A stretch of 64,000 nt of DNA from Leucoraja ocellata (lineage: Eukaryota), in NCBI GenBank assembly GCA_036785375.1, contig JAWMAR010000070.1, positions 7,440,001 through 7,504,000 of the forward strand, in the 5' to 3' direction. Within the stretch, counting starts at the first letter, position 1. Each line of letters starts with the position of its first letter. This document shows, one piece after another, positions 1-51,515 of the stretch. The notes under the pieces were generated by a model. The model did not search any database. It was not told the origin of the DNA and saw only the letters and a program-made list of their open reading frames with translations. A program made the position numbers and the translations under genes.

Positions 1-2
1 AT

Positions 3-167
3 GTTCACTGGAAGTTCGTGCAACGAAACGTCCTTTGGGAACAGGACGCCACGTTGCTCCTGACAGGTGTAAAAGAGGAAGATAAAGGGACGTATTCCTG
101 TGTTTGGATCAAGTATCGTCAGAAACCGGTATGTGAATTATTGATGCAGCTGATGATCTCTCACTGA
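3..167 (+). CDS. 3' end of a secreted single Ig-V-domain gene, subfamily A (5' part outside window)
   Basis: Frame from nt 3 reads VHWKFVQRNVLWEQDATLLLTGVKEEDKGTYSCVWIKYRQKPVCELLMQLMISH*. It matches the end of the 46129 copy with one synonymous difference seen. Confidence 0.85.
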   Translation, partial: VHWKFVQRNVLWEQDATLLLTGVKEEDKGTYSCVWIKYRQKPVCELLMQLMISH

Positions 168-28968: not shown

Positions 28969-29481
28969 TCACATCACTGTCAGCTTGGTATTTAGTCTAC
29001 ATTCCTCTTTGCCAGTGAACCAAGCGCAGGAATACATCCCAACATCACTCTTCTGTAAACCCGTGATGACCAACGAGGCATCCCGTGTCCCATCCACGTT
29101 TGTTTCCTTGAACGACCAGCGGCCGGCCCCCCCTGGATAGGTCGCACCTTTCCCTTTAGTAAACACGGCCAATGTCCCCTTCCCTTTACTCCAGGTGACA
29201 GCAAAGTTGCTGGGTCCATCCTTCCCTGTGGGTACTATACAGGGTAGCGTAGCAGAACCACCCTTTGCCGTCACATCCGTGAATTTCATCTTGTTCGCAG
29301 CTGGCCTAGCACCGCATTCTGGAGTATCTTGTTTGTTGACTTGTCGAGGCTCCCGTGCGTTCCACCCGGGCAAGTTTGCTTCCTCTCCCCATTCTCTGGA
29401 GATCGGACCTGTTCCAGTTGCGGAGACTTGCCACACCATCTCCACAAGGACCATGAATCCTATCCATCTCTGCAGTCCCAT
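28969..29481 (-). CDS. Secreted single Ig-V-domain pro-protein, subfamily B (170 aa)
   Basis: Same architecture: GGSATLPC...TWSKG...RDASL...DVGMYSC...ECRL..LTVM*. Confidence 0.85.
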   Translation of the reverse strand: MGLQRWIGFMVLVEMVWQVSATGTGPISREWGEEANLPGWNAREPRQVNKQDTPECGARPAANKMKFTDVTAKGGSATLPCIVPTGKDGPSNFAVTWSKGKGTLAVFTKGKGATYPGGAGRWSFKETNVDGTRDASLVITGLQKSDVGMYSCAWFTGKEECRLNTKLTVM

Positions 29482-30056
29482 GTTCCTGTGGGTGAAACAA
29501 TGGGTCACCTTATTGCAACTCAGTAGGATTCATGATGACATTCCCTGAACCCGCCCAGAGTTGGGGAATCGAGAACCAGAGGACATCGGTTTAAGGCGAG
29601 GGGGGGGGGGAAAGATTTAATGGGAAACTGAGGGGTGACTTTTTTACACAAAGGGTGGAGGGTGTTTGGAACGAGCTGCCGGAAGAGGTAGTTGGGGCAG
29701 GTACTATCACAATGATTAAGAAACAGTTAGACAGGTACATTGATAGGACAGGATTAGAGGGGTAAGGGCCAAACGCAGGCAGGTGGGTCTAGTATTGATG
29801 GGACACGTTGGTGGGCGTGGGCAAGTTGGGCCGAAGGTCTCGCTGTGACTCTATGACTCCATCACTTGTCCCACCCCGGTCATTCCTCCTTCTCCCTGGT
29901 CCTGTCTAGCAGAAGGTACAGAAGCTTGAAAGCGCGCACCACCAGACTCAGGAACAGCTTCTTCCCCTCTGCTATCAGGCTTCTGAACTGGGGGAACAGT
30001 GAACAGAGACAATCCCACCCCCATCACTCACAGACACTTGAAGGATCCACAGGGTT

Positions 30057-30405
30057 GGTTACCAGCTCCGGAGTCTCCACACAGGGTGACGGGGTTGGTC
30101 TTGTTCTCATCTCCTGCCATCGCTCGCTCCTTTTATACCGACTCCCGGCTTCTCCTGCCCCTCATTGTCTGCCCTCACGTACATTCAACCAATCACTGCC
30201 TCCCACGGAGCATTGGCCGGAGTCAGCCGCGACCTCTCCACCCTCTGCCAAACGTGTCGTTGCATCAGCCGTTAACGTTTAACAAGAACAACGTCATCCC
30301 AGCTGCCAGCGGCCAACCAGGCGCCCCACACATCCTGCTTGTGTCTCCACCACGTCTCGCTTTGGCCACCCATCGGACCAGATGTCCCAGCCACGCCACG
30401 TCACC
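30057..30405 (-). promoter_or_regulatory. Family promoter and exon 1 (for the 28969 copy)
   Basis: TATA 30131-30137, ERSE 30189-30207, TGACGTGG 30396-30403 (rc). Confidence 0.7.
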
Positions 30406-32274
30406 ACCACAGCCCTTGGCACCTGCGCTGGTTCCACAGTTTATACTCAATCTGAGCCGGCAGCTGGGATGGCGTTGGATCAATTCTTCCTTCCCAACAA
30501 CCATCAGGCTGTTGAACACGACACGACACTGAGGTCAACGATGAACGTCTATGGAATGTCCAAGGTTGCACTAATGCCCCTGTCCCACTTAGGAAACCTG
30601 AACGGAAACCTCTGGAGACTTAGCGCCCCACCCAAGGTTTCCGTGCGGTTCACGGAGGTTTTTGTCTGTCTCCCTACCTGCTTCCACTACCTGCAACCTC
30701 CGGCAACCACCTGCAACCTCCGGCAACCACCTGCAACCTCCGGGAACCTTCGGGACGAAACGTTGCCTATTTCCTTCACTCCATAGATGCTGCTGCACCC
30801 GCTGAGTTTCTCCAGCATTTTTGTGTACCTTCGATTTTCCAGTATCTGCAGTTTCTTCTTCAACATCAAATAGAACAAGTTGTCCTACAACTTTAGGCTG
30901 TGCACGCCACACGAAAGAAGAAGTTGACATGTCTGTCCCGCCATCCCGGGTATTAACCTGGTGAACCTACGTTGCACTCCCTCAATAGCAAGAATGCCCT
31001 TCCTCAAAATGACAGTGAAGTGCTGCCTCTACAGAGACACCCAATAGACCTGATAGAATGGTATAAAATGATGAGAGGCGTAGATAGCTGAGATAACCTG
31101 AAGCAATTTCCCGAAGGCTTTGGAGACGGTGCAGAAGCAGTTCCCCAGAATGATGTCGGGATCGGAGGTTGTTAGTTATATGGACAGGTTGGATAATCTT
31201 GGATTAGTTTCTCTAGAACTTCAGATGTTGAGCGGAGACCTGACAGAAGGTAATAAAATTCTTAAGGGGTTGGACAGGCTAGATGCAGGAACGTTGTTCC
31301 CGATGTTGGGGAAGTCCAGAACTAGGGGTCACAGTTTAAGGATAAGGGGGAAATCTTTTAGGACCGAGATGAGAAAAACATTTTTCACACAGAGAGTGGT
31401 GAATGTGGAATTCTCTGCCACAGAAGGTATTTGAGGCCAGTTCATTGGCTATATTTAAGAGGGAGTTAGATGTGGCCCTTGTGGCTAAAGGGATCAGGGG
31501 GTATGGAGAGAAGGCAGGTACTGGATACTGAGTTTGATGATCAGCCATGATCATATTGAATGGCGGTGCAGGCTCGAAGGGCCGAATGGCCTACTCCTGC
31601 ACCTATTGTCTATTGTCTACTGTCTATTGTCTATTGAGATAGGAAACATTTAAAGATACAAGTGGAGGTAGTTACAATAGTTCAGAGACTTTATCTAAAA
31701 AATCTCATGGACATGCAGGGAATTGAGATTATGGATCAGGTGCAGGCAGAGGAGATTAGCTGAACTTGGCATCATGTTCAGCACGGACCTTGTGGGCCGA
31801 AGGGCCTGTTCCTGTGCTGTTCCATGTTCTATGTTACATCATCTTCTCAATCACATCTTGAGAAGAACATTTTCCAGAGGTGCCCAGGTACCACCAGTGT
31901 GACATTCATTGTATCTGCTGCAGTCAATGAGTGTGTTGTGTAGACAGCCAGAGGAGAAGATGGGATTTATGTGGAGTTTCATTTTGTAATCATTATTTAT
32001 TTAATATCATAGTGTAATAGAGTCATAGAGTGATACAGCGTGGAAACAGGCCCTTCGGCCCAACTTGCCCACACTGGCCAACATGTCCCAGCTACACTAG
32101 TCCCACCTATCCACGTTTGGTCCATATCCTTCTAAATCTGACCTATACCTGTTCCTGTTTAACTGTTTCTTAAACGTTGGGATAGTTTCTGCCTCAACTG
32201 CGATGAGTTGACCAGAACGAGACGTGGTGGAGACACAAGCAGGATGTGTGGGGCGCCTGGTTGGCCGCTGGCAG

Positions 32275-32520
32275 CTGGGATGACGTTGTTCTTGTTAAAC
32301 GTTAACGGCTGATGCAACGACACGTTTGGCAGAGGGTGGAGAGGTCGCGGCTGACTCCGGCCAATGCTCCGTGGGAGGCAGTGATTGGTTGAATGTACGT
32401 GAGGGCAGACAATGAGGGGCAGGAGAAGCCGGGAGTCGGTATAAAAGGAGCGAGCGATGGCAGGAGATGAGAACAAGACCGACCCCGTCACCCTGTGTGG
32501 AGACTCCGGAGCTGGTAACC
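32275..32520 (+). promoter_or_regulatory. Family promoter and exon 1 (for the 33093 copy)
   Basis: ERSE 32370-32388, TATAAAA 32440-32446, GTAACC donor near 32515. Confidence 0.7.
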
Positions 32521-33092
32521 AACCCTGTGGATCCTTCAAGTGTCTGTGAGTGATGGGGGTGGGATTGTCTCTGTTCACTGTTCCCCCAGTTCAGACGCCT
32601 GATAGCAGAGGGGAAGAAGCTGTTCCTGAGTCTGGTGGTGCGCGCTTTCAAGCTTCTGTACCTTCTGCTAGACAGGACCAGGGAGAAGGAGGAATGACCG
32701 GGGTGGGACAAGTGATGGAGTCATAGAGTCACAGCGAGACCTTCGGCCCAACTTGCCCGCGCCCACCAATGTGTCCCCATCAATACTAGACCCACCTGCC
32801 TGCGTTTGGCCCTTACCCCTCTAATCCTGTCCTATCAATGTACCTGTCTAACTGTTTCTTAATCATTGTGATAGTACCTGCCCCAACTACCTCTTCCGGC
32901 AGCTCGTTCCAAACACCCTCCACCCTTTGTGTAAAAAAGTCACCCCTCAGTTTCCCATGAAATCTTTCCCCCCCTCACCTTAAACCGATGTCCTCTGGTT
33001 CTCGATTCCCCAACTCTGGGCGGGTTCAGGGAATGTCATCATGAATCCTACTGAGTTGCAATAAGGTGACCCATTGTTTCACCCACAGGAAC

Positions 33093-33632
33093 ATGGGGCT
33101 GCAGAGATGGATAGGATTCATGGTCCTTGTGGAGATGGTGTGGCAAGTCTCCGTAACTGGAACAGGTCCGATCTCCAGCGAATGGGGAGAGGAAGCAAAC
33201 TTGGCCGGGCGGAACACACGGGCGTATTTCAAAGTCACCAATGAACCGCTTCCAAGATGCACGAACGAGTCAGATTCTGATGCCATCAGTCATCACCCAT
33301 CACCGATTAACAAGAAGGTGCTCGTTGCATCTCTGGGTGGTTCTGTTACGTTGCCATGTAATATATCCATCCTTAAAAATCATTACAGGGTTGTTCAATG
33401 GAAAAAAGATGGTGTTCAAATTGCCAGTTTCCATGAGAGAGCGTATGCGCGTTATACGGGGTCTGATGTTCACTGGAAGTTCGTTGATCACAACGTCTAT
33501 ATGGCTCAGGACGCCACGTTGCTCCTGACAGGTGTAAAAGAGGAAGATACAGGGACGTATTCCTGTGTTTGGTTCCATTATAGAGATAGACCGTTTTGTG
33601 AATTATTGATGCAGCTGATGATCTCTCACTGA
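33093..33632 (+). CDS. Secreted single Ig-V-domain pro-protein, subfamily A (179 aa)
   Basis: Shared leader, RNTR, GGSVTLPC, VQWKKDG, QDATL, DTGTYSC, FCELL. Sequons NES and NIS. No TM segment. Confidence 0.85.
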   Translation: MGLQRWIGFMVLVEMVWQVSVTGTGPISSEWGEEANLAGRNTRAYFKVTNEPLPRCTNESDSDAISHHPSPINKKVLVASLGGSVTLPCNISILKNHYRVVQWKKDGVQIASFHERAYARYTGSDVHWKFVDHNVYMAQDATLLLTGVKEEDTGTYSCVWFHYRDRPFCELLMQLMISH

Positions 33633-36600
33633 TTCAGCAGGGCCAGTCCCAGGGTCAGTAGCAAAGTCTAGTTTAGTTTAGTTTTGTTCAGAGGTACATC
33701 AGGGAAACAAGCCCTTCGGCCACAGAGTCAATGGGGACCAGTGATCACCCCATATACTAGTTCTATCCCACACACTAGATACAATTTACACTGACCAATT
33801 AACCTACAAACCTGCACGTCTCTGGGGTGTGGGACGAAACCGGAGCACCCGGATTCCAAAGAGGAAGGAAGATTCCAAGGGGAGTTAGGGGCGACCGTGG
33901 CTGACAAGGGAAGTCAGGGACACTATCAAAATAAAAGAGAACAGGTATAACGTTGCAAAGATGAGCGGAAAGCCAGGGGATTAGGTAACTCTTTTAAAGA
34001 GCAACAGAAGATAACTAAAAAAGCAATACGGGGAGAAAAGATGAGGTATGAAGGTAAGATAGCCAAGAATAGAAAGGAGGATCGTAAAAGCTTCTTTAGA
34101 TATGTGAAAAAAATTAGTTCAGACTAAAATTGGACCTTTATAGACTAAAAACTTTGGATCCGTCTTCACTAAGGAGAACACAAACAATCTCCCTGATGTA
34201 CTAGTGGCCAGAGGATCTGGGGACAATGGAGAGCCAGTGGATGTAGTGTACCTGGACTTGCAGGAAGTATTTGATAAGGTCCCACATAGGAGATTAATGG
34301 GCAAAATTAGAGCACATGGTATTGGGGGAAGGGCCTGTTTCCATATTGTTTGACTCTGACACGAAGTAGGGAATAGTAAAGGTATAAAGATGAGCAGCGT
34401 GGAAGGTGTGAGCGTGGATCGCATGCAGTGAGGAGAACTGACCTTGCACCGGTAAATGTACGTTTAATTTAAATAAACTTTCTTCTGCCTGCCCTGAAGA
34501 CAGCCGGTGTGAGTGATTCTTTGTACGCCAGCATTGAGTTGGGTGTGAACTTTGTGCAACTTTTGCTCACTACGGGCAACATCGCCGGATTAAAGGGCCT
34601 GTCCCACGAGCATGCGACTCCATGCGGCAAGCGCGACCTAACGTGGTCACTTGAGCCGTACGGCCTCGCGGGGCCGGTCCCACTTTGATCGCCGGAGCCG
34701 TATGGAGTTGTGTGGAGCTGGTCCCGACATCGCGCGGGGCTCTGAAAAACTGAATATGTTAGGATATGGAAACAGGTTCTTCGGCCCACCGAGTCTAACC
34801 CAACCAGTGATCACCCCTACACTAGTTCTAACCTACACACTAGGGACAATTTACTGAAGCCAATTAACCATCAAATCTACACGTCTTTGTAATCTGAAAG
34901 GGAACCAGAGCACCCGGAGGAAACCCACATGGTCCCAGGGACAATGTACATACACTGTACAGACAGTGCCCGTAGTTACCATCGAAGGCGGGTCTCTAGC
35001 GCTGTAAGGCAGCAACTCTACCGCTGCGCCACTGTACCGCCCCTGCATTGCCCTCGTGCATTGTTAGGGCTGCTGATTAGAGTCCAGTTTTGACCCTCGT
35101 TGGGTGTCAATTGTGGTTGTCAAGGAGCTTTCTTACCTCCGTATGGAGCCTGGTCTTCCAGTTATAGACCCACACCACCCTGGCCACACTCTCTTATCAC
35201 CACTACTGAGGGGAAGGTACAGGAGCCTGAGAACCGTGAGCTCCAGGTTCAAGAGCAGCTTCTTCCCAGCAAGCACAAGGTTGTTGAACCAGCCTGCACA
35301 ACCCCAACCACAACCCTACGCCACTCACCACAACCCTACACAACCCTGATGGACACTGCACCACTGGTGATGCCCCACGTACGTTGTCTTGTACTATCAT
35401 GGTCTGGTTTACTTGGAATAACTGAGACCTTATTGTGTACTTATGGTGTAAGTATATAATCATGATAGGCCAGGGTAGACAGTGGAGGGCTGCCACTACA
35501 GAGCCGCCCATAGACCTGATAGAATTATATAAAGTTACTGTGCAGACCAAGTACAAACCCAACGCAATATTCCACCACTCACCCATTCCCCAACGCTATA
35601 TTTCACCACTCACTCATAGCCCCTAATTGTGCAGGAGCGGCTCATTTCTCCGTTTCCCCTCTTCCTCCTCTTCACCCTCCCTCTTCAATACTTAGAGAGG
35701 GAGGAGGGGTAGAGGGAGGGGGTAGAGAGGGAGAGAGGCAGAGAGAAAGGGGGTAGAGAGAGAGTGGGAAGGGGTAGAGGTTGAGGGAGGGGGGGGAGGG
35801 GGGTAGCGGGGTGGAGGGATTAAATACATTCTTCTCAAGCTTACCCCCAGTCTAGTTCAGTCAAAAACCACTGAGTCAAGCACTGGAACAATTAATCTTT
35901 ATTTTTGGATTGTACATCAAATTCAACTACACGATACCTAAACCACTGCGGGTTCAATCCTTGTATCTGCTTGGCCAAGCCCTTCAGCCTCGTGCAAGCA
36001 GAAACACTCCAAAAGGTCACGCTGTCCCAAGGATTCTTCCAGAAGATCGACAAAGGACCTCGTGGGGGCTGCCTTTTATAAGTCCCCGAACCTTGAGGGG
36101 CCGAACTACATAGGGGTGGTCTCTTTACAATCCAATCAAACATATTAATTACATCAGTATATTATAGACAGTTCCCCAGACCACTAACAGATCCCATACA
36201 TTGTTTCAGGAGAAGCTTCTGGAAGATGCTAACTTAACTTGAATAATGCAACATTTACCCTGGAATTCAAACAAACCTGCCAGGGCTCAATACTTTAGCC
36301 AATCAACAAACAGTAGGATAACTGCCTGGCACATTATATACAATATTTACAATGCTGTTGCAGTAATCCAATCAACCATGCATTTACACTTCATTGGAGG
36401 TCATCTCCTTGCACGGAAATCGGCATCAAAACATGGGGGGGCACAATTCCATGGCGGCACACATGCACACGTGTGCATGCGGCACACACGCGAGGATTCG
36501 GCCGTGGGCCCTGTGGACGGTAACATCGGGAACTGACTTGGTTGGTGACCGACTCCGAACTCCAGCAACAGCAGCTTCGTCCGCCCCGAATCGTGGGGCT

Positions 36601-38789
36601 TGAATCGGCCCGTTCGCGGGGCCTTTCATCGCCCGGCAGGGGTTTCAACATTGGTATTGATGTGGATAGAGAACTGGCTGGCAGACAGAAAGCAAAGAGT
36701 AGGAGTAAACGGGTCCTTTTCAGAATGGCAGGCAGTGACTAGTGGGGTACTGCAAGACTCAGTGCTGGGACCCCAGCTATTTACGATATATATTAATGAT
36801 CTGGATGAGGGAGTTGAATGCAACATCTCCAAGTTTGCAGATGACACGAAATGAGGGGCAGTGTTAGCTGTGAGGAGGGTGCTAGGAGGCTGCAAGGTGA
36901 CTTGGATAGGTTGGGTGAGTGGGCAAATGCATGGAAGATGCAGTATAATGTGGATAAATGTGAGGTTATCCATTTTGGTGTAAAAAACAGGAAAGTAGAT
37001 TATTATCTGAATGGTGGCCGATTAGGAAAAGGGGAGATGCAACGAGACCTGGGTGTCATGGTACACCAGTCATTAAAAGTGGGTATGAAGGTGCAGCAGG
37101 CAGTGAAGAAACAGAATGGTATGTTAGCATTCATAGCAAAAGGATTTGAGTATAAGAGCAGGGAGGTTCTACTGCAGTTGTACAGGGTCTTGGTGAGACC
37201 ACACCTGGTGTATTGCGTACAGTTTTGGTCTCCTAATCAGAGGAAAGACATTCTTGCCATAGAGGGAGTACAGAGAAAGTTCACCAGACTGATTCCTGGG
37301 ATGTCAGGACTTTATGGCATACTGAGTTGGATGATCAGTATAATCATTAGAAATGGCAGTGCAGGCTCGAAGGGCCGAATGGCCTACTCCTGCACCTATT
37401 TTCTATGTTTCTATGGGAGCCTCGATCGCCTCGATGCAGCAGTTTGATTTTAAGCCGCTCGGGCGCTGAAAGGCCCCGCGAACGGGACGATTCTGCCCAT
37501 AGAAAGCGTCTGATAAAGTCCGGAACACAAAACATGGGCGGGGGGGAATCGTCCCCCACCTCCCAAAGCATAGGGAGACGTGCCCCCTGTTCCCCCCCCC
37601 CAGGGATTTCTGCCCATGGCGGTCACGATATCTCCTTCACCGCCGCAGTCTCGACGCCTCTTTGATGGGCGCGAAAAACCCCATGTGGGGCGTAGAAGGC
37701 CGGGTCGGATAAACCGGAATGTTAATTTCAATGAGGTCCTCCCCCTGACATCACTGGAAGCTGCTGGTCGACCACTCCCCCTTTGTGACATCACTCGAAG
37801 GGGGGTGAAGGTTTGCCGTTTAATAAGTTGGTTTTCACTATTTTTAAAACGCTATAACTTGTGAAGTACAGCATGCAATGTGAAGTGGAGCAGTTTATTT
37901 TGTCAAAGGGGTTAATGTGATTAATAATGTGCGGAGGAGGGGAGGAGGAGAGGGGAGAGAAGGAGGAGGGTGTAGACGAGGGGGAGGGAGTGTAAGAGAC
38001 TCGCCTGCGCTGTTGTGGGGTATGGGTGAGTGGTGGAATATTACGTTGGGGGGATGGGTACATCGCAAAGGAATCTCATTTAGATTTCTTGGGAGGAGGC
38101 TTTTCATTGTGGGGGGTGGAATTGCTGAGAGGTTTCATTTACTCCTTATTTATAAAATAATTACGATTGTGGGGAGGGGTGGGTTGGGGGCGGGGGCTCC
38201 CCGTTTCATTGTGGGGGGGTGGAGTAAGAGAGAGGTTTCATTTCCAGAATTTTCCTTGTGGGAGGGTGGGGTGAGTATTGTGGGGTATGGGTGAGTGGTG
38301 GAATATTACGTTGGGGGGAACGGGACCCAACGGGTCCCACTTGGTCTAGTTATCATTATTTATTTAATGTTTCACGTTTACACCAATCTCTCCACCACCA
38401 CGAACAAGCAGCACAAGACGCAACAAGACAGACACCATTGTATGCAGATGCCGAGAAGTGTGATCAGCTCTGGCTGAACAACTAATCTTGTGTGTGGATT
38501 CGATAAGCAGAAGATTTAATGTCATAGTGTTATACAGTCATAGAGTGATACAGCATGGAAACAGGCCCTTTGGCCCAACTTGCCCGCATTGGACAACATG
38601 TCCCAGCTACACTAGTCCCACCTGTCCACGTTTGGTCCATATCCCTCCAAATCTGACCTATACCTGTTCCTGTCTAGCTGTTTCTTAAACGTCGGGATAG
38701 TTTCTGCCTCAACTGCGATGGGTTGACCAGAACGAGACGTGGTGGAGACACAAGCAGGATGTGTGGGGCGCCTGGTTGTCCGCAGGCAG

Positions 38790-39035
38790 CTGGGATGACG
38801 TTGTTCTTGTTAAACGTTAACGGCTGATGCAACGACACGTTTGGCAGAGGGTGGAGAGGTCGCGGCTGACTCTGGCCAATGCTCCGTGGGAGGCAGTGAT
38901 TGGTTGAATGTACGTGAGGGCAGACAATGAGGGGCAGGAGAAGCCGGGAGTCGGTATAAAAGGAGCGAGCGATGGCAGGAGATGAGAACAAGACCGACCC
39001 CGTCACCCTGTGTGGAGACTCCGGAGCTGGTAACC
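38790..39035 (+). promoter_or_regulatory. Family promoter and exon 1 (for the 39614 copy)
   Basis: ERSE 38885-38903, TATAAAA 38955-38961, donor near 39030. Confidence 0.7.
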
Positions 39036-39613
39036 AACCCTGTGGATCCTTCAAGTGTCTGTGAGTGATGGGGGTGGGATTGTCTCTGTTCACTGTTCCC
39101 CCAGTTCAGAAGCCTGATAGCAGAGGGGAAGAAGCTGTTCCTGAGTCTGGTGGTGCGCGCTTTCAAGCTTCTGTACCTTCTGCTAGACAGGACCAGGGAG
39201 AAGGAGGAATGACCGGGGTGGGACAAGTGATGGAGTCATAGAGTCACAGCGAGACCTTCGGCCCAACTTGCCCGCGCCCACCAACGTGTCCCCATCAATA
39301 CTAGACCCACCTGCCTGCGTTTGGCCCTTACCCCTCTAATCCTGTCCTATCAATGTACCTGTCTAACTGTTTCTTAATCATTGTGATAGTACCTGCCTCA
39401 ACTACCTCTTCCGGCAGCTCGTTCCAAACACCCTCCACCCTTTGTGTAAAAAAGTCACCCCTCAGTTTCACATTAAATCTTTCCCCCCCCCCCCCTCGCC
39501 TTAAACCGATGTCCTCTGGTTCTCGATTCCCCAACTTTGGGCGGGTTCAGGGAATGTCATCATGAATCCTACTGAGTTGCAATAAGGTGACCCATTGTTT
39601 CACCCACAGGAAC

Positions 39614-40153
39614 ATGGGACTGCAGAGATGGATAGGATTCATGGTCCTTGTGGAGATGGTGTGGCAAGTCTCCGCAACTGGAACAGGTCCGATCTCCAGA
39701 GAATGGGGAGAGGAAGCAAACTTGGCCGGGCGGAACGCACGGGCGTATTTCAAAGTCACCAATAAACCGCTTCCAAGATGCACGAACGAGTCAGATTCTG
39801 ATGCCATCAGTCATCACCCTTCACCGATTAACAAGAAGGTGCTCGTTGCATCTCTGGGTGGTTCTGTTACGTTGCCATGTAATATATCCATCCTTAAAAA
39901 TCATCACACGGTTGTTCAATGGAAAAAAGATGGTGTTCAAATTGCCAGTTTCCATGAGAGAGCGTATGCGCATTATACGGGATCTGATGTTCACTGGAAG
40001 TTCGTTGATCACGACGTCTATATGGCTCAGGACGCCACGTTGCTCCTGACAGGTGTAAAAGAGGAAGATAAAGGGACGTATTCCTGTGTTTGGTCCGTAT
40101 ATAGTGGTAGACCGTTTTGTGAATTATTGATGCAGCTGATGATCTCTCACTGA
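39614..40153 (+). CDS. Secreted single Ig-V-domain pro-protein, subfamily A (179 aa)
   Basis: Paralog of the 33093 copy with 13 amino-acid differences. Intact ORF. Confidence 0.85.
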   Translation: MGLQRWIGFMVLVEMVWQVSATGTGPISREWGEEANLAGRNARAYFKVTNKPLPRCTNESDSDAISHHPSPINKKVLVASLGGSVTLPCNISILKNHHTVVQWKKDGVQIASFHERAYAHYTGSDVHWKFVDHDVYMAQDATLLLTGVKEEDKGTYSCVWSVYSGRPFCELLMQLMISH

Positions 40154-43100
40154 TTCAGCAGGGCCAGTCCCAGGGTCAGTAGCAAAGTCTAGTTTAGTTT
40201 AGTTTCGTTCAGAGGTACAACAGGGAAACAAGCCCTTCGGCCCACAGAGTCAATGGGGACCAGTGATCACCCCATATACTAGTTCTATCCCACACACTAG
40301 ATACAATTTACACTGACCAATTAACCTACAAACCTGCACGTCTCTGGGGTGTGGGACGAAACCGGAGCACCCGGATTCCAAAGAGGAAGGAAGATTCCAA
40401 GGGGAGTTAGGGGCGACCGTGGCTGACAAGGGAAGTCAGGGACACTATCAAAATAAAAGAGAACAGGTATAACGTTGCAAAGATGAGCGGAAAGCCAGGG
40501 GATTGGGTAACTCTTTTAAAGAGCAACAGAAGATAACTAAAAAAGCAATACGGGGAGAAAAGATGAGGTATGAAGGTAAGATAGCCAAGAATAGAAAGGA
40601 GGATCGTAAAAGCTTCCTCAGATATGTGAAAAAAATTAGTTCAGACTAAAATTGGTCCTTTATAGACTAAAAACTTTGGATCCGTCTTCACTAAGGAGAA
40701 CACAAACAATCTCCCTGATGTACTAGTGGTCAGGGGATCTGGGGACAATGGAGAGCGAGTGGATGTAGTGTACCTGGACTTTCAGGAAGTATTTGATAAG
40801 GTCCCACATAGGAGATTAATGGGCAAAATTAGAGCACATGGTATTGGGGGAAGGGCCTGTTTCCATATTGTTTGACTCTGACACTAAGTAGGGAATAGTA
40901 AAGGTATAAAGATGAGCAGCGTGGAAGGTGTGAGCGTGGATCACATGCAGTGAGGAGAACTGACCTTGCTTGCACCGGTAAATGTACGTTTAATTTAAAT
41001 AAACTTTCTTCTGCCTGCCCTGAAGACAGCCGGTGTGAGTGATTCTTTGTACGCCAGCATTGAGTTGGGTGTGAACTTTGTGCAACTTTTGCTCACTACG
41101 GGCAACATCGCCGGATTAAAGGGCCTGTCCCACGAGCATGCGACTCCATGCGGCAAGCGCGACCTAACGTGGTCACTTGAGCCGTACGGCCTCGCGGGGC
41201 CGGTCCCACTTTGATCGCCGGAGCCGTATGGAGTTGTGTGGAGCTGGTCCCGACATCGCGCGGGGCTCTGAAAAACTGAATATGTTAGGATATGGAAACA
41301 GGTTCTTCGGCCCACCGAGTCTAACCCAACCAGTGATCACCCCTACACTAGTTCTAACCTACACACTAGGGACAATTTACTGAAGCCAATTAACCTACAA
41401 ATCTACACGTCTTTGCAATCTGAAAGGAAACCAGAGCACCCGGAGGAAACCCACATGGTCACAGGGACAATGTACATACACTGTACAGACAGTGCCCGTA
41501 GTCACCATCGAAGGCGGGTCTCTAGCGCTGTAAGGCAGCAACTCTACCGCTGCGCCACTGTACCGCCCCTGCATTGCCCTCGTGCATTGTTAGGGCTGCT
41601 GATTAGAGTCCAGTTTTGACCCTCGTTTGGTGTCAATTGTGGTTGTCAAGGAGCTTTCTTACCTCCGTATGGAGCCTGGCCTTCCAGTTATAGACCCACA
41701 CCACCCTGGCCACACTCTCTTATCACCACTACTGAGGGGAAGGTACAGGAGCCTGAGAACCGTGAGCTCCAGGTTCAAGAGCAGCTTCTTCCCAGCAAGC
41801 ACAAGGTTGTTGAACCAGCCTGCACAACCCCAACCACAACCCTACGCCACTCACCACAACCCTACACAACCCTGATGGACACTGCACCACTGGTGATGCC
41901 CCACGTACGTTGTCTTGTACTATCATGGTCTGGTTTACTTGGAATAACTGAGACCTTATTGTGTACTTATGGTGTAAGTATATAATCATGATAGGCCAGG
42001 GTAGACAGTGGAGGGCTGCCAGTACAGAGCCACCCATAGACCTGATAGAATTATATAAAGTTACTGTGCAGACCAAGTACAAACCCAATGCAATATTCCA
42101 CCACTCACCCATTCCCCAACACTATATATTCCAGCACTCACTCATAGCCCCTAATTGTGCAGGAGCGGCTCATTTCTCCGTTTCCTCTCTTCCTCCTCTT
42201 CACCCTCCCTCTTCAATACCTAGAGAGGGAGGAGGGGTAGAGGGAGGGGGTAGAGAGGGAGAGAGGCAGAGAGAAAGGGGGTAGAGAGAGAGTGGGAAGG
42301 GGTAGAGGGTGAGGGGGGGGTAGAGTGGGGTGGAGGGATTAAATACATTCTTCTCAAGCTTACCCCCAGTCTAGTTCAGTCAAAAACCACTGAGTCAAGC
42401 ACTGGAACAATTAATCTTTATTTTTGGACTGTACATCTAATTCAACTACACGATACCTAAACCACTGCGGGTTCAATCCTTGTATCTGCTTGGCCAAGCC
42501 CTTCAGCCTCGTGCAAGCAGAAACACTCCAAAAGGTCACGCTGTCCCAAGGATTCTTCCAGAAGATCGACAAAGGACCTCGTGGGGGCTGCCTTTTATAA
42601 GTCCCCGAACCTTGAGGGGCCGAACTACATAGGGGTGGTCTCTTTACAATCCAATCAAACATATTAATTACATCAGTATATTATAGACAGTTCCCCAGAC
42701 CACTAACAGATCCCATACATTGTTTCAGGAGAAGCTTCTGGAAGATGCTAACTTAACTTGAATAATGCAACATTTACCCTGGAATTCAAACAAACCTGCC
42801 AGGGCTCAACACTTTAGCCAATCAACAAACAGTAGGATAACTGCCTGGCACATTATATACAATATTTACAATGCTGTTGCAGTAATCCAATCAACCATGC
42901 ATTTACACTTCATTGGAGGTCATCTCCTTGCACGGAAATCGGCATCAAAACATGGGGGTGCACAATTCCATGGCGGCACACATGCACACGTGTGCATGCG
43001 GCACACATGCGAGGATTCGGCCATGGGCCCTGTGGACGGTAACATCGGGAGCTGACTTGGTTGGTGACCGACTCCGAACTCCAGCAACAGCAGCTTCGTC

Positions 43101-45307
43101 CGCCCGGAATCGTGAGGCTTGAATCGGCCCGTTCGCGGGGCCTTTCATCGCCCGACGGGGGTTTCAACATTGGTATTGATGTGGATAGAGAACTGGCTGG
43201 CAGACAGAAAGCAAAGAGTAGGAGTAAACGGGTCCTTTTCAGAATGGCAGGCAGTGACTAGTGGGGTACTGCAAGACTCAGTGCTGGGACCCCAGCTATT
43301 TACGATATATATTAATGATCTGGATGAGGGAGTTGAATGCAACATCTCCAAGTTTGCAGATGACACGAAATGGGGGGCAGTGTTAGCTGTGAGGAGGATG
43401 CTAGGAGGCTGCAAGGTGACTTGGATATGTTGGGTGAGTGGGCAAATGCATGGAAGATGCAGTATAATGTGGATAAATGTGAGGTTATCCATTTTGGTGT
43501 AAAAAACAGGAAAGTAGATTATTATCTGAATGGTGGCCGATTAGGAAAAGGGGAGATGCAACGAGACCTGGGTGTCATGGTACACCAGTCATTAAAAGTG
43601 GGCATGCAGGTGCAGCAGGCAGTGAAGAAAGAGAATGGTATGTTAACATTCATAGCAAAAGGATTTGAGTATAAGAGCAGGGAGGTTCTACTACAGTTGT
43701 ACAGGGTCTTGGTGAGACCACACCTGGAGTATTGCGTACAGTTTTGGTCTCCTAATCTGAGGAAGGACATTATTGCCATAGAGGGAGTACAGAGAAAGTT
43801 CACCAGACTGATTCCTGGGATGTCAGGACTTTATGGCATACTGAGTTGGATGATCAGTATAATCATATTAAATGGCAGTGCAGGCTCGAAGGGCCGAATG
43901 GCCTACTCCTGCACCTATTTTCTATGTTTCTATGGGAGCCTCGATCGCCTCGATGCAGCAGTTTGATTTTAAGCCGCTCGGGCGCTGAAAGGCCCCGCGA
44001 ACGGGACGATTCTGCCCATAGAAAGCGTCTGATAAAGTCCGGAACACAAAACATGGGCGGGGGGGGGAATCGTCCCCCACCTCCCAAAGCATAGGGAGAC
44101 ATGCCCCCTGTTCCCCCCCCAGGATTTCCGCCCATGGCGGTCACGATATCTCCTTCACCGCTGCAGTCTCGACGCCTCTTTGATGGCCGCGAAAAACCCC
44201 ATGTGGGGCGTAGAAGGCCGGATCGGATAAAGCGGAAAGTTAATTTCAATGAGGTCATCCCCCTGACATCACTGGAAGCTGGTGGTCGACCACTCCCCCT
44301 TTGTGACATCACTCGAAGCGGGGTGAAGGTTTGCCGTTTAATAAGTTGGTTTTCACTATTTTTAAAACGCTATAACTTGTGAACTACAGCATGTAATGTG
44401 AAGTGGAGCAGTTTATTTTGTCAAAGGGGTTAATGTGATTAATAATGTGCGGAGGAGGGGAGGAGGAGAGGGGAGAGAAGGAGGAGGGTGTAGACGAGGG
44501 GGAGGGAGTGTAAGAGACTCGCCTGCGCAGTTGTGGGGTATGGGTGAGTGGTGGAATATTGCGTTGGGGGGACGGGTACATCGCAAAGGAATCTCATTTA
44601 GATTTCTTGGGAGGAGGCTTTTCATTGTGGGGGGTGGAATTGCTGAGAGGTTTCATTTACTCCTTATTTATAAAATAATTACGATTGTGGGGAGGGGTGG
44701 GTTGGGGGCGGGGGCTCCCCGTTTCATTGTGGGGGGGTGGAGTAAGAGAGAGGTTTTATTTCCAGAATTTTCCTTGCTAGGGGATGGGGTGAGTATTGTG
44801 GGGTATGGGTGAGTGGTGGAATATTACGTTGGGGGAACGGGGCCAAACGGGTCCCACTTGGTCTAGTTATCATTATTTATTTAATGTTTCACGTTTACAC
44901 CAATCTCTCCACCACCACGAACAAGCAGCACAAGACGCAACAAGACAGACACCATTTTATGCAGATGCCGAGAAGTGTGATCAGCTCTGGCTGAACAACT
45001 AATCTTGTGTGTGGATTCGATAAGCAGAAGATTTAATGTCATAGTGTTATACAGTCATAGAGTGATACAGCATGGAAACAGGCCCTTTGGCCCAACTTGC
45101 CCACATTGGACAACATGTCCCAGCTACACTAGTCCCACCTGTCCACGTTTGGTCCATATCCCTCCAAATCTGACCTATCCCTGTTCCTGTCTAGCTGTTT
45201 CTTAAACGTCGGGATAGTTTCTGCCTCAACTGCGATGGGTTGACCAGAACGAGACGTGGTGGAGACACAAGCAGGATGTGTGGGGCGCCTGGTTGGCCGC
45301 TGGCAGC

Positions 45308-45552
45308 TGGGATGACGTTGTTCTTGTTAAACGTTAACGGCTGATGCAACGACATGTTTGGCAGAAGGTGGAGAGGTCGCGGCTGACTCCAGCCAATGCT
45401 CCGTGGGAGGCAGTGATTGGTTGAATGTACGTGAGGGCAGACAATGAGGGGCAGGAGAAGCCGGGAGTCGGTATAAAAGGAGCGAGCGATGGCAGGAGAT
45501 GAGAACAAGACCGACCCCGTCACCCTGTGTGGAGACTCCGGAGCTGGTAACC
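45308..45552 (+). promoter_or_regulatory. Family promoter and exon 1 (for the 46129 copy)
   Basis: ERSE 45402-45420, TATAAAA 45472-45478, donor near 45547. Confidence 0.7.
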
Positions 45553-46128
45553 AACCCTGTGGATCCTTCAAGTGTCTGTGAGTGATGGGGGTGGGATTGT
45601 CTCTGTTCACTGTTCCCCCAGTTCAGAAGCCTGATAGCAGAGGGGAAGAAGCTGTTCCTGAGTCTGGTGGTGCGCGCTTTCAAGCTTCTGTACCTTCTGC
45701 TAGAGAGGACCAGGGAGAAGGAGGAATGACCGTGGGTGGGACAAGTGATGGAGTCATAGAGTCACAGCGAGACCTTCGGCCCAACTTGCCCGCGCCCACC
45801 AACGTGTCCCCATCAATACTAGACCCACCTGCCTGCGTTTGGCCCTTACCCCTCTAATCCTGTCCTATCAATGTACCTGTCTAACTGTTTCTTAATCATT
45901 GTGATAGTACCTGCCTCAACTACCTCTTCCGGCAGCTCGTTCCAAACACCCTCCACCCTTTGTGTAAAAAAGTCACCCCTCAGTTTTCCATGAAATCTTT
46001 CCCCCCCCCCTCGCCTTAAACCGATGTCCTCTGGTTCTCGATTCCCCAACTCTGGGCGGGTTCAGGGAATGTCATCATGAATCCTACTGAGTTGCAATAA
46101 GGTGACCCATTGTTTCACCCACAGGAAC

Positions 46129-46665
46129 ATGGGACTGCAGAGATGGATAGGATTCATGGTCCTTGTGGAGATGGTGTGGCAAGTCTCCGCAACTGGAACA
46201 GGTCCGATCTCCAGAGAATGGGGAGAGGAAGCAAACTTGGCCGGGCGGAAGGCACGGGCTCCTCGACAGGTCACCAATGAAACGCTTCCAAGATGCACGA
46301 ACGAGTCAGATTCTGATGCCATCAGTCATCACCTATCAACGATTAACAAGAAGGTGCTCGTTGCATCTCTGGGTGGTTCTGTTACTTTGCCATGTAATGT
46401 ATCCAACGTTGACAATAGTCCCGAGGTTACATGGAATAAAGATGGTGTTGAAATTGCCTATTTCCATAGTAGAGTGCATGAGCGTTATACAGGATCTGAT
46501 GTTCACTGGAAGTTCGTGCAACGAAACGTCCTTTGGGAACAGGACGCCACGTTGCTCCTGACAGGTGTAAAAGAGGAAGATAAAGGGACGTATTCCTGTG
46601 TTTGGATCAAGTATCGTCAGAAACCGGTTTGTGAATTATTGATGCAGCTGATGATCTCTCACTGA
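46129..46665 (+). CDS. Secreted single Ig-V-domain pro-protein, subfamily A (178 aa)
   Basis: Leader ending RKARAPR|Q. Same framework as 33093 and 39614 but with different loops. Confidence 0.85.
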   Translation: MGLQRWIGFMVLVEMVWQVSATGTGPISREWGEEANLAGRKARAPRQVTNETLPRCTNESDSDAISHHLSTINKKVLVASLGGSVTLPCNVSNVDNSPEVTWNKDGVEIAYFHSRVHERYTGSDVHWKFVQRNVLWEQDATLLLTGVKEEDKGTYSCVWIKYRQKPVCELLMQLMISH

Positions 46666-49600
46666 TTCAGCAGGGCCAGTCCCAGGGTCAGTAACAAAGT
46701 CTAGTCTAGTTTAGTTTCGTTCAGAGGTACAACAGGGAAACAAGCCCTTCGGCCACAGAGTCAATGGGGACCAGTGATCACCCCATATACTAGTTCTATC
46801 CCACACACTAGATACAATTTACACTGACCAATTAACCTACAAACCTGCACGTCTCTGGGGTGTGGGACGAAACCGGAGCACCCGGATTCCAAAGAGGAAG
46901 GAAGATTCCAAGGGGAGTTAGGGGCGACCGTGGCTGACAAGGGAAGTCAGGGACACTATCACAATAAAAGAGAACAGGTATAACGTTGCAAAGATGAGCG
47001 GAAAGCCAGGGGATTAGGTAACTCTTTTAAAGAGCAACAGAAGATAACCAAAAAAGCAATACGGGGAGAAAAGATGAGGTATGAAGGTAAGATAGCCAAG
47101 AATAGAAAGGAGGATCGTAAAAGCTTCTTTAGATATGTGAAAAAAATTAGTTCAGACTAAAATTGGTCCTTTATAGACTAAAAACTTTGGATCCGTCTTC
47201 ACTAAGGAGAACACAAACAATCTCCCTGATGTACTAGTGGCCAGAGGATCTGGGGACAATGGAGAGCCAGTGGATGTAGTGTACCTGGACTTGCAGGAAG
47301 TATTTGATAAGGTCCCACATAGGAGATTAATGGGCAAAATTAGAGCACATGGTATTGGGGGAAGGGCCTGTTTCCATATTGTTTGACTCTGACACTAAGT
47401 AGGGAATAGTAAAGGTATAAAGATGAGCAGCGTGGAAGGTGTGAGCGTGGATCACATGCAGTGAGGAGAACTGACCTTGCTTGCACCGGTAAATGTACGT
47501 TTAATTTAAATAAACTCTCTTCTGCCTGCCCTGAAGACAGCCGGTGTGAGTGATTCTTTGTACGCCAGCATTGAGTTGGGTGTGAACTTTGTGCAACTTT
47601 TGCTCACTACGGGCAACATCGCCGGATTAAAGGGCCTGTCCCACGAGCATGCGACTCCATGCGGCAAGCGCGACCTAACGTGGTCACTTGAGCCGTACGG
47701 CCACGCGGGGCCGGTCCCACTTTGATCGCCGGAGCCGTATGGAGTTGTGTGGAGCTGGTCCCGACATCGTGTGGAGCTGGTCCCAACATCGCATATGTTA
47801 GGATATGGAAACAGGTTCTTCGGCCCACCGAGTCCAACCCAACCAGTGATCACCCCTACACTAGTTCTAACCTACACACTAGGGACAATTTACTGAAGCC
47901 AATTAACCATCAAATCTACACGTCTTTGCAATCTGAAAGGAAACCAGAGCACCCGGAGGAAACCCACATGGTCACAGGGACAATGTACATACACTGTACA
48001 GACAGTGCCCGTAGTTACCATCGAAGGCGGGTCTCTAGCGCTGTAAGGCAGCAACTCTACCGCTGCGCCACTGTACCGCACCTGCATTGCCCTCGTGCAT
48101 TGTAGGGCTGCTGATTAGAGTCCAGTTTTGACCCTCGTTGCGTGTCAATTGTGGTTGTCAAGGAGCTTTCTTACCTCCGTATGGAGCCTGGTCTTCCAGT
48201 TATAGACCCACACCACCCTGGCCACAAACAGTAGGATAACTGCCTGGCACATTATATACAATATTTACAATGCTGTTGCAGTAATCTAATCAACCATGCA
48301 TTTACACTTCCTTGGAGGTCATCTCCTTGCACGGAAATCGGCATCAAAACATGGGGGGCCACAATTCCATGGCGGCACACATGCACACGCGAGGATTCGG
48401 CCGTGGGCCCTGTGGACGGTAACATCGGGAGCTGACTTGGTTGGTGACCGACTCCGAACTCCAGCAACAGCAGCTTCGTCCGCCCCGAATCGTGAGGCTT
48501 GAATCGGCCCGTTCGCGGGGCCTTTCATCGCCCGGCGGTGGTTTCAACATTGGTATTGATGTGGATAGAGAACTGGCTGGCAGACAGAAAGCAAAGAGTA
48601 GGAGTAAACGGGTCCTTTTCAGAATGGCAGGCAGTGACTAGTGGGGTACTGCAAGACTCAGTGCTGGGACCCCAGCTATTTACGATATATATTAATGATC
48701 TGGATGAGGGAGTTGAATGCAACATCTCCAAGTTTGCAGATGACACGAAATGGGGGGCAGTGTTAGCTGTGAGCAGGATGCTAGGAGGCTGCAAGGTGAC
48801 TTGGATAGGTTGGGTGAGTGGGCAAATGCATGGAAGATGCAGTATAATGTGGATAAATGTGAAGTTATCCATTTTGGTGGCAAAAACAGGAAAGTAGATT
48901 ATTATCTGAATGGTGGCCGATTAGGAAAAGTGGAGATGCAACGAGACCTGTGTGTCATGGTACACCGGTCATTAAAAGTAGGCATGCAGGTGCAGCAGGC
49001 AGTGAAGAAAGAGAATGGTATGTTAGCATTCATAGCAAAAGGATTTGAGTATAAGAGCAGGGAGGTTCTACTGCAGTTGTACAGGGTTTTGGTGAGACCA
49101 CACCTGGAGTATTGCGTACAGTTTTGGTCTCCTAATCTGAGGACAGACATTCTTGCCATAGAGAGAGTACAGAGAAAGTTCACCAGACTGATTCCTGGGA
49201 TGTCAGGACTTTATGGCATACTGAGTTGGATGATCAGTATAATCATATTAAATGGCAGTGCAGGCTCGAAGGGCCGAATGGCCTACTCCTGCACCTATTT
49301 TCTATGTTTCTATGGGAGCCTCGATCGCCTCGATGCAGCAGTTTGATTTTAAGCCGCTCGGGCGCTGAAAGGCCCCGCGAACGGGACGATTCTGCCCATA
49401 GAAAGCGTCTGATAAAGTCCGGAACACAAAACATGGGCGGGGGGGAATCGTCCCCACCTCCCAAAGCATAGGGAGACGTGCCCCATGTCCCCCCCCAGGA
49501 TTTCCGCCCATGGCGGTCACGATATCTCCTTCACCGCCGCAGTCTCGACGCCTCTTTGATGGCCGCGAAAAACCCCATGTGGGGCGTAGAAGGCCGGGTC

Positions 49601-50687
49601 GGATAAAGCGGAAAGTTAATTTCAATGAGGTCCTCCCCCTGACATCACTGGAAGCTGCTGGTCGACCACTCCCCCTTTGTGACATCACTCGAAGGGGGGT
49701 GAAGGTTTGCCGTTTAATAAGTTGGTTTTCACTATTTTTAAAACGCTATAACTTGTGAACTACAGCATGTAATGTGAAGTGGAGCAGTTTATTTTGTCAA
49801 AGGGGTTAATGTGATTAATAATGTGCGGAGGAGGGGAGGAGGAGAGGGGAGAGAAGGAGGAGGGTGTAGACGAGGGGGAGGGAGTGTAAGAGACTCGCCT
49901 GCGCAGTTGTGGGGTATGGGTGAGTGGTGGAATATTACGTTGGGGGGACGGGTACATCGCAAAGGAATCTCATTTAGATTTCTTGGGAGGAGGCTTTTCA
50001 TTGTGGGGGGTGGAATTGCTGAGAGGTTTCATTTACTCCTTATTTATAAAATAATTACGATTGTGGGGAGGGGTGGGTTGGGGGGCGGGGGCTCCCCGTT
50101 TCATTGTGGGGGGGTGGAGTAAGAGAGAGGTTTCATTTCCCAGAATTTTCTTGTGGGAGGGTGGGGGTGAGTATTGTGGGGTAATGGGGTGAGTGTGGAA
50201 TATTACGTTGGGGGAACGGGACCCAACGGGTCACACTTGGGTCTAGTTATCATTATTTATTTAATGTTTCACGTTTACACCAATCTCTCCACCACCACGA
50301 ACAAGCAGCACAAGACGCAACAAGACAGACACCATTGTATGCAGATGCGAGAAGTGTGATCAGCTCTGGCTGAACAACTAATCTTGTGTGTGGATTCGAT
50401 AAGCAGAAGATTTAATGTCATAGTGTTATACAGTCATAGAGTGATATAGCATGGAAACAGGCCCTTTGGCCCAACTTGCCGTATTGGACAACATGTCCCA
50501 GCTACAATAGTCCCACCTGTCCACGTTTTGGTCCATATCCCTCCAAATCTGACCTATCCCTGTTCCTGTCTAGCTGTTTCTTAAACGTCGGGATAGTTTC
50601 TGCCTCAACTGCGATGGGTTGACCAGAACGAGACGTGGTGGAGACACAAGCAGGATGTGTGGGGCGCCTGGTTGGCCGCTTGGCAGC

Positions 50688-50935
50688 TGGGATGACGTTG
50701 TTCTTGTTAAACGTTAACGGCTGATGCAACGACACGTTTGGCAGAGGGTGGAGAGGTCGCGGCTGACTCCGGCCAATGCTCCGTGGGAGGCAGTGATTGG
50801 TTGAATGTACGTGAGGGGCAGACAATGAGGGGCAGGAGAAGCCGGGAGTCGGTATAAAAGGACGCGAGCGATGGCAGGAGATGAGAACAAGACCGACCCC
50901 GTCACCCTGTGTGAGAGACTCCGGAGCTGGTAACC
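50688..50935 (+). promoter_or_regulatory. Family promoter and exon 1 (for the 51516 pseudogene)
   Basis: ERSE 50782-50800, TATAAAA 50853-50859. Confidence 0.65.
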
Positions 50936-51515
50936 AACCCTGTGGATCCTTCAAGTGTCTGTGAGTGATGGGGGTGGGATTTGTCTCTGTTCACTGTTCC
51001 CCCAGTTCAGAAGCCTGATAGCAGAGGGGAAGAAGCTGTTCCTGAGTCTGGTGGTGCGCGCTTTCAAGCTTCTGTACCTTCTGCTAGACAGGACCAGGGA
51101 GAAGGAGGAATGACCGGGGGTGGGACAAGTGATGGAGTCATAGAGTCACAGCGAGACCTTCGGCCCAACTTGCCCGCGCCCACCAACGTTGTCCCCATCA
51201 ATACTAGACCCACCTGCCTGCGTTTGGCCCTTACCCCCCTAATCCTGTCCTATCAATGTACCTGTCTAACTGATTCTTAATCATTGTGATAGTACCTTGC
51301 CTCAACTACTTCTTCCGGCAGCTCGTTCCAAACACCCTCCACCCTTTGTGTAAAAAAGTCACCCCTCAGTTTTCCCATGAAATCTTTCCCCCCCCTCGCC
51401 TTAAACCGATGTCCTCTGGTTCTCGATTCCCCAACTCTGGGCGGGGTTTCAGGGAATGTCATCATGAATCCTACTGAGTTGCAATAAGGTGACCCATTGT
51501 TTCACCCACAGGAAC

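Follow-up and report, generated by a model that had tools for sequence, protein, structure and literature searches.

The locus examined here, a 64,000-nucleotide (nt) window of Leucoraja ocellata DNA (contig JAWMAR010000070.1, positions 7,440,001 to 7,504,000 of the forward strand), carries three intact tandem genes, A1, A2 and A3 (subfamily A), that each encode one V-type immunoglobulin (IgV) domain, and it raises the question of whether the residues that differ between these genes form a single binding surface and, if so, of what kind. An earlier note on this DNA had placed the variation in loops equivalent to the complementarity-determining regions (CDR1, CDR2 and CDR3) and hypervariable region 4 (HV4) of a receptor V domain, on a fixed framework, and had proposed an antibody-like paratope that was diversified in the germline without rearrangement. 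The changes did concentrate at these loops, and there they exceeded every local neutral yardstick. Most likely, the variable residues make up a predicted ligand-binding surface, kept diverse among young paralogues, on an IgV protein that is nectin-like and secreted; that it is an antibody-like paratope is a hypothesis.

The BC, C'-C'', DE and FG variants quoted in the earlier note, together with four segments described there as invariant, were recovered exactly in all three open reading frames (ORFs), and mapping on AlphaFold2 models of A1 and A3 placed the changes at the same four loops (see Table 1 for the patches). With DSSP boundaries alone, variation affected 16 of the 29 tip-loop residues (BC, C'C'', DE and FG) vs. 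1 of 18 in the opposite loops (A'B, CC', C''D and EF; Fisher P = 5e-4). A similar picture emerged when the domain was divided into halves, since 26 of 57 positions of the tip half but 4 of 47 of the other half varied among A1, A2 and A3 (P = 2.6e-5); these halves were set from DSSP strand midpoints after the variable sites had been seen. All 13 variable strand residues belonged to strands C, C', C'', F and G, and none to A', B, D or E; thus, the variable surface takes in the upper part of the GFCC'C'' sheet in addition to the tip. Judging from strand topology in the models, not from distances or solvent exposure, the variable residues probably share one face. Nectin/CAR/TIGIT-type IgV proteins bind their partners via the GFCC'C'' sheet. 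For A1 and A2 only, the count was 7 of 57 in the tip half vs. 2 of 47 in the other half (P = 0.18), and eight of the nine V-domain replacements between these two genes fell within or beside the four patches.

Divergence of the non-coding flanks of the A units was 1.0–2.3% in all three pairs, and that of the coding sequence (CDS) was 3.3% for A1-A2 (18/540), 11.7% for A1-A3 (63/537) and 11.6% for A2-A3. In tip-half codons of the A1-A3 pair, the proportion of nonsynonymous differences (pN) was 0.281 (37.8/134.5) and that of synonymous differences (pS) was 0.124, with corresponding values of 0.028 and 0.06 in the other half, about 0.09 for pS over the V domain, and a flank rate of 0.014 (27/1956). 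Tip pN was therefore about 20 times the flank rate (P = 1e-30), and it was also above tip pS (P = 0.035), above pS of the whole V domain (P = 0.001) and above pN of the other half (P = 2e-8; all Fisher). The younger-looking comparison of CDS, A1-A2, gave a tip pN of 0.062 vs. 0.015 in the flank (P = 6e-4), and the ratio of nonsynonymous to synonymous rates (dN/dS, Nei-Gojobori NG86 method) for the V domain was 1.7–2.0 in the three pairs. A pair of family pseudogenes in the window diverged by 1.7% over the exon-equivalent part vs. 1.1–1.4% in its flanks; thus, the exon is no intrinsic mutational hot spot. Contigs from a DNA-like, independent-looking run matched A1 at 33360–33491 with 0 differences; this run may or may not stem from the sample used for the assembly.

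The description of the loops as varying on a fixed framework held in part. Replacements did lie at the CDR1/CDR2/HV4/CDR3-equivalent end of the domain. The A1-A3 framework pN, however, was indistinct from the flank rate (P = 0.2), and because of this match the fixed framework needs no constraint and is explained by recency or homogenisation. Between subfamily A and subfamily B, the other intact subfamily in the window, the framework is not fixed (44–47% identity).

The fold was assessed from sequence profiles and models. The Pfam V-set family (PF07686) matched all three A proteins (36.9, 38.9 and 42.7 bits; gathering cut-off 26), and no Pfam family other than Ig-type models and a weak DUF7043 match was found in the A proteins at E up to 1. 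The V-set hallmarks C89, W103, Y156 and C158 were invariant in 14 of 14 family sequences, as were cysteines 56, 89, 158 and 169, all four of which are intact in A1-A3; Cys89-Cys158 is probably the canonical bond, and Cys56-Cys169 probably a second disulfide that ties the N-terminal extension to the G strand. In both AlphaFold2 models, all strands from A' to G were present and the V-domain blocks had predicted local distance difference test (pLDDT) scores of 68–93; in A1, pLDDT was <50 at residues 1–49 and 62–71, with a short strand near Cys56. Strand order and loop positions in the A3 model were as in A1, with a longer FG loop (turn at 161–166, cf. 163–164 in A1). After the leader there is only one hydrophobic 19-mer, which coincides with strands A'-B and their surroundings in the Ig fold, and the A products are predicted to be secreted.

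Structural comparison with VIA gave the D1 domains of nectin-1/2/3 as best matches (Z 14.2–15.3, root-mean-square deviation (rmsd) 1.4–2.2, 101–108 residues aligned, 18–26% identity), with CAR, JAML, MXRA8, CD200, TIGIT, CD226, CD2 and CD4 at Z 13–14; no entry among the 50 VIA matches listed was described as an antibody V domain. Taken as one class, nectin/PVR/CAR/JAML/TIGIT/CD226/CD200/CD2 matched at Z 13–15.3 and rmsd 1.4–2.5 over ~100–108 residues (16–26% identity). The best Foldseek matches were CD155, nectin, PD-L1 and CD2, and the best sequence match in the Protein Data Bank (PDB) was PVR (E 5e-5), with NITR10 among the weak PDB matches. As modelled, the A fold is nearest to nectin/CAR/TIGIT-type IgV, not to antibody V, and this resemblance to nectins is one of fold and no proof of orthology.

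Hallmarks of rearranging receptor genes were sought in all three A genes. Heptamers of the recombination signal sequence (RSS; CACAGTG/CACTGTG) numbered 0 in the CDS and ~70 nt downstream, and no J-type FGXG motif was found in the G strand, which is contiguous with the F strand. The leader is not split, and neither a C domain nor any other domain follows the V domain. Of the antibody-like paratope proposed earlier, what survives is a germline-encoded V-set domain with no sign of rearrangement; its affinity to antibodies was not borne out, given the nectin/CAR/TIGIT-type neighbours of the fold and the lack of J, RSS and C elements.

We consider it probable, though well short of certain, that A1-A3 are young tandem paralogues in which the tip and upper-sheet residues form a ligand-contact surface diversified by selection. 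According to this proposal, the genes would be members of a family of the skate lineage whose compact genes have two exons and encode one small secreted protein apiece, with a signal peptide, a flexible N-terminal extension and one nectin-like IgV domain, and the predicted ligand-contact surface would comprise the BC, C'C'', DE and FG loops at the N-terminal tip and the adjoining upper GFCC'C'' sheet. Diversifying selection would remodel this surface while the rest of the unit stays at the background divergence of 1–2%, and much of the change would arise through short multi-nucleotide runs, with segment switch, micro-conversion and repeated hits as candidate routes. Each gene would carry one fixed germline specificity, so that the repertoire would amount to a handful of genes; in this respect, the family would resemble innate multigene binders of the immunoglobulin superfamily (IgSF), not antibodies.

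Several observations weigh against the proposal of young paralogues diversified by selection. The three full A sequences represent effectively two lineages (A1/A2 vs. A3). Flanks of A3 and of A0, a fourth A-type gene cut by the start of the window, are about as diverged as those of other pairs, yet no amino-acid change separates the two genes in the DE-FG part; within 162 common coding nt there is one difference, which is synonymous. The unchanged A0/A3 loops therefore indicate that change is not clock-like and is no steady consequence of duplication. Synonymous divergence of the V domain (~6/67) is above that of the flanks (P = 6e-4), an excess that fits an older A3-type lineage or imported tracts, and homogenised units may harbour an A3-type exon core of older descent. 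In subfamily B, 22 of 57 tip-half sites vs. 21 of 47 in the other half were variable, including the C''D and EF loops; thus, a tip-restricted binding surface is no family rule. Lastly, RNA depth over 33044–33652 was zero but for about one read in X10, across three runs from three studies (about 5, 6 and 25% of each read; 32000–34600, 2601 bases, covered). Depth was likewise zero over most of exon 1 in these runs, and because the leader is common to all copies, the whole family must be silent or very low in those libraries.

The alternative with most in its favour is concerted evolution, under which older A1/A2- and A3-type cores persist in units that were homogenised by unequal crossing-over or conversion, or short tracts were imported from paralogues outside the window; we regard this as a real possibility, though not the leading one. 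Homogenisation would have covered the promoter-leader cassette, the G strand with the 3' untranslated region, and framework stretches, and differences would persist only at tract ends or in segments in which selection opposes homogenisation. Near-identity extends from the promoter over exon 1 and the intron to coding nt ~130 in all nine copies (A, B and pseudogenes), and this promoter-to-leader cassette is shared even between A and B: A1 and B2 diverge by 4.6% in the leader vs. 44.7% in the rest of the CDS, and the leaders of B1 and B2 show 0/130 differences. The tree of the flanks is star-like (1–2% for all A pairs), while the CDS tree is ((A1,A2),A3). P0001, the one Leucoraja protein model of A type, has the A1/A2 residue at 14 of the 22 V-domain sites where A3 differs, the A3 residue at two and neither at six, which makes the A3-type states look like those of a separate lineage. 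The raised V-domain pS, the unchanged A0/A3 loops and the likeness of the AYFK/APRQ patch of A1/A2 to SYWH in Leucoraja P0002 also favour concerted evolution. An older A3-type core or imported short tracts fit these data at least as well as point substitution in situ.

The pattern of the changes themselves bears on this alternative. The 63 A1-A3 differences fall in 5–6 runs (e.g., 8 of 10 nt at CDS 132–141), 18 of the 43 differing codons carry two or three changes, and transitions and transversions number 23 and 40 in the CDS vs. 54 and 44 in the flanks (Fisher P = 0.024). An 11-mer scan of the 64-kb window for patch donors gave none but the A0 copy, so that no donor for the A3- or A1/A2-specific patches is at hand there otherwise, and the mosaic is very fine, with four to five patches of 10–40 nt between identical stretches; usual gene-conversion tracts are coarser than such patches. 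Even under concerted evolution, selection for diversity would still be needed, because tip pN exceeds V-domain pS.

The strong form of the antibody-like idea holds that the A genes are a germline repertoire of soluble antigen-recognition proteins that use a CDR-like tip to bind pathogen-derived or other foreign structures. This is rather unlikely. The location of the changes at CDR1/CDR2/HV4/CDR3-equivalent positions with pN > pS and the secreted-protein layout do speak for it, but the fold neighbours described above, the missing FGXG motif, RSS heptamer, split leader and C domain, the small number of A genes (only three to four per 64 kb), the spread of variation across the whole fold in subfamily B and the near-total lack of RNA reads on the exon all speak against it.

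A non-immune role was also weighed, in which the family would comprise fast-evolving secreted reproductive, egg-envelope or chemical-signal proteins under sexual selection or conflict. A word-indexed search of 5.8 billion proteins returned seven relatives from 47 candidates, six from Leucoraja and one from Rhinoraja, two genera placed in different families of Rajiformes, from which a skate origin of the window would follow; all seven are named 'uncharacterized protein', are 175–221 aa long and have the layout of the A genes. A profile search beyond these skate relatives added just two weak teleost Ig proteins, and an index-free search of 1.84 billion representatives found P0001 alone to be close (85%), the rest being generic multi-Ig proteins at ≤44% identity. 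An atlas search led to generic IgV clusters only (TIGIT, VSIG10L2, CD200R and PD-1), which we treat as leads. No literature on the A/B gene family was found, including by LOC identifiers, in a search that covered texts apart from supplementary files. Such a narrow taxonomic range (two skate genera), pN/pS of at least 1 in both subfamilies (1.0–1.8 over the mature part in B, where the B2-B4 pair shows an exon-over-flank excess as in A, with 0.6% divergence upstream vs. 9.3% in the V part) and the silence of three ordinary RNA libraries, as for a specialised tissue or stage, are consistent with a non-immune role. Many such secreted families combine a conserved signal and pro region with a mature domain that varies. 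Against it stands the wide use of the nectin/TIGIT-like fold in immune and adhesion recognition, and a non-immune role seems doubtful.

A more radical mechanism has only a slim chance of being correct. Under it, skates would have a lineage-specific repertoire of soluble IgV proteins in which germline cassettes for the CDR-equivalent loops are replaced (by segment switch, templated micro-conversion or targeted multi-nucleotide mutation) and homogenisation keeps promoter, leader, framework and flanks uniform, so that binding diversity would arise on an antibody fold independently of RAG-based receptors. Whatever the standing of this mechanism, the segment-wise mode of change in the A genes recalls ASSET in snake toxin genes, where short exon segments are radically changed but introns and remaining exon sequence are conserved, as described in the accessible part of the source (PMC2711939). 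The A genes conform to an ASSET-type pattern, with segment-wise change in binding-loop segments and flanks at 1–2%, whether or not the same process is at work; the toxins differ in fold and biology and belong to a venom context. The mechanism of ASSET is itself not settled.

Decaying or unconstrained duplicates, or assembly artefacts, with the loop pattern reflecting weaker loop constraint, are highly improbable, despite two clear family pseudogenes in the window (6113 and 51517) and the nearly absent RNA reads, because neutral change cannot exceed the local background as tip pN does, the opposite loops are nearly unchanged, the three ORFs and their four cysteines are intact, divergence of the genuine pseudogenes keeps to the rate of their flanks, and DNA contigs confirm the A1 exon.

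The A genes were compared with known systems by their architecture. Like the nectin-type receptors, they have V domains that do not rearrange, and the strand residues that vary in the A proteins fall in the sheet (GFCC'C'') through which such receptors bind. Nectins have a V-C2-C2 ectodomain, a transmembrane segment and a cytoplasmic tail. The A proteins, in contrast, end after a lone V domain, possess an additional Cys pair (56/169), and have their signal peptide and V domain encoded in one exon. NITRs combine a V domain bearing a J-like motif with a transmembrane region and a signalling motif; the A genes lack FGXG, and their proteins end at the G strand without a transmembrane segment. In the accessible parts of the sources, CEACAM/PSG N domains are described as a multigene V-type family with variation of the recognition surface (PMC13278318), and amphioxus VCBPs as having a chitin-binding domain in addition to two V domains in tandem (PMC2632668). 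With CEACAM/PSG, NITR and VCBP families, the A genes share a tandem multigene arrangement, surface-focused V variation, signs of positive selection and an absence of rearrangement. Unlike VCBPs, they have only one V domain, with no further Pfam domain beside it, and unlike CEACAMs, they carry no further domains or anchors. The one-exon layout of signal plus V and the hyper-conserved promoter-leader cassette are features of the A genes that are not known from CEACAM, NITR or VCBP.

Two further families are soluble or secreted. UrIg/UrIg2 are germline-encoded, secreted, non-rearranging V-bearing proteins of elasmobranchs, with homodimeric products and with genes in which a split leader is combined with a VJ exon and several C domains, according to the portion of the source available (PMC12227049); the A genes resemble them in their germline-encoded V domain and differ in lacking the J motif, C domain and split leader. 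Carp SITR is presented, in the available portion of its source, as a soluble, CD300-like member of a multigene family, with two Ig domains and without transmembrane segment or signalling motif (PMC3031540). The A proteins share with it the state of a soluble IgSF multigene family and differ in having one nectin-like V domain.

Among lineages with RAG-based antibodies, that of the cartilaginous fish is the oldest, and a further system of V-domain diversification in this group bears on how V domains have served recognition. The array offers an unusually clean natural experiment, as its units share 98% identity and the differences are almost confined to four tip loops and the sheet next to them, and both the binding surface and the mode of change (point substitution vs. 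segment replacement) are directly testable. If the ligand were microbial, the genes would represent a new soluble innate recognition family; if endogenous, they would add to the nectin/TIGIT fold class a new family of ligands that evolve fast.

A gene model was built for A1 (Table 1). In A1-A3, a single uninterrupted ORF runs from the ATG to a stop right behind the G strand. The A1 acceptor reads ..CACCCACAG, exon 2 starts at 33089 with the ATG four bases on, and the join of exons 1 and 2 gives the ..CL|N-MGLQ.. junction found in annotated Leucoraja proteins. The exon-1 ATG probably lies at or before the start of transcription. Because it is 17 nt past the TATA box, the 31-residue N-terminal extension of the Leucoraja models is probably untranslated, and the public Leucoraja models probably include it only because the longest ORF was annotated. 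The MAGDENK.. N-terminus of those gene models (30 residues) is encoded by exon 1, equivalents of which lie in other copies at 5461, 38972 and 45489, and, on the minus strand, at 13346, 30120, 57407 and 60637. An intron within the ORF (GT at 33153 or 33166) was considered and dropped, as skate protein models read straight through, and so was a multi-exon receptor, as the A genes stop in frame directly past the G strand and annotated skate proteins do likewise. A splice donor past the V domain was sought in the A genes, and there was no GT where B genes carry GTGAAG.

Table 1. Positions of subfamily A genes, their variable patches and related features in the 64-kb window.
Feature	Position	Strand	Remarks
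Tandem array of ~6.5-kb units bearing A1, A2 and A3	31999..48226	+	From self-BLAST
A1 CDS	33093..33632	+	179 aa + stop, wholly in exon 2; signal peptide, ~50-aa N-terminal extension with Cys56, one IgV
A2 CDS	39614..40153	+	179 aa + stop
A3 CDS	46129..46665	+	178 aa + stop; BC region one codon shorter
A0, fourth A-type gene	1..167	+	3' end only, A3-like, cut by window start
CDR1-equivalent patch (A1)	33360..33401	+	Residues 90-103, B end/BC loop/C start; variable 91, 93-95, 97-102; DSSP loop 88-99
CDR2-equivalent patch (A1)	33426..33452	+	Residues 112-120, C' end/C'-C'' turn/C''; variable 112, 115, 117-120
HV4-equivalent patch (A1)	33486..33506	+	Residues 132-138, DE loop; variable 132-134, 136-138
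CDR3-equivalent patch (A1)	33573..33596	+	Residues 161-168, F-G hairpin tip; variable 161, 162, 164-166, 168
A1 model strands A' to C''			Residues: A' 75-80, B 84-87, C 100-105, C' 108-114, C'' 118-121
A1 model strands D to G			Residues: D 128-130, E 143-146, F 154-162, G 165-178
TATAAAAGG box of A1	32440..32448	+	17 nt 5' of exon-1 ATG at 32457
A1 exon 1	32457..32545	+	Probably non-coding 5' untranslated region; 100% match to first 30 residues of Leucoraja model P0001
A1 intron	32546..33088	+	GT..AG, 543 nt; donor GTGAGT at 32546
First AATAAA past A1 stop (~300 nt)	33930..33935	+	Equivalents at 40452 (A2) and 46963 (A3)
Subfamily B, four intact genes	12155-12667, 28972-29481, 55602-56114, 59487-59999	-	Starts at 12667, 29481, 56114, 59999
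Third-subfamily pseudogene	6113-6650		KISKDY.. type, like Leucoraja P0003/P0004; frameshift by 2-nt deletion
Third-subfamily pseudogene	51517-52060		KISKDY.. type; TGG replacing ATG and 1-nt insertion, broken frame

RNA depth around A1 was confined to flanking short interspersed repeats at 32000–32110, 33740–33830 and 34175–34350, where it reached up to ~900 in all three runs. These reads run on into unrelated sequence, and the signal is repeat transcription, not transcription of A1.

The window as a whole is free of N and holds one small gene family amid fragments of long interspersed nuclear elements (LINEs); only these turned up. In the self-BLAST, 31999–41714 and 38514–48226 were 97.3% identical over 9742 columns, and self-comparison also revealed a higher-order duplication in which 1–8364 resembles 46499–53813. 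The near-identical promoter-to-leader stretch spans 32201–33222 in A1 and, for example, 29333–30375 on the minus strand in B2, with a sharp boundary at about codon 43. Just past this boundary, AYFK occurs in A1 (33224–33235, codons 45–47) and A2 (39745–39756), with 8 of 10 consecutive nt changed; A3, the B genes, the pseudogenes and most Leucoraja proteins have (A/E)PRQ at this site, Leucoraja P0002 has SYWH, and AYFK abolishes an R-x-x-R motif. Outside the A genes, the 6.5-kb units contain LINE-type ORFs only. An intact LINE ORF2 of 744 aa, of the endonuclease plus reverse-transcriptase type, lies between gene copies at 20072–22306 (+), and fragments of a similar LINE are present in every 6.5-kb unit (e.g., 36851–37447).

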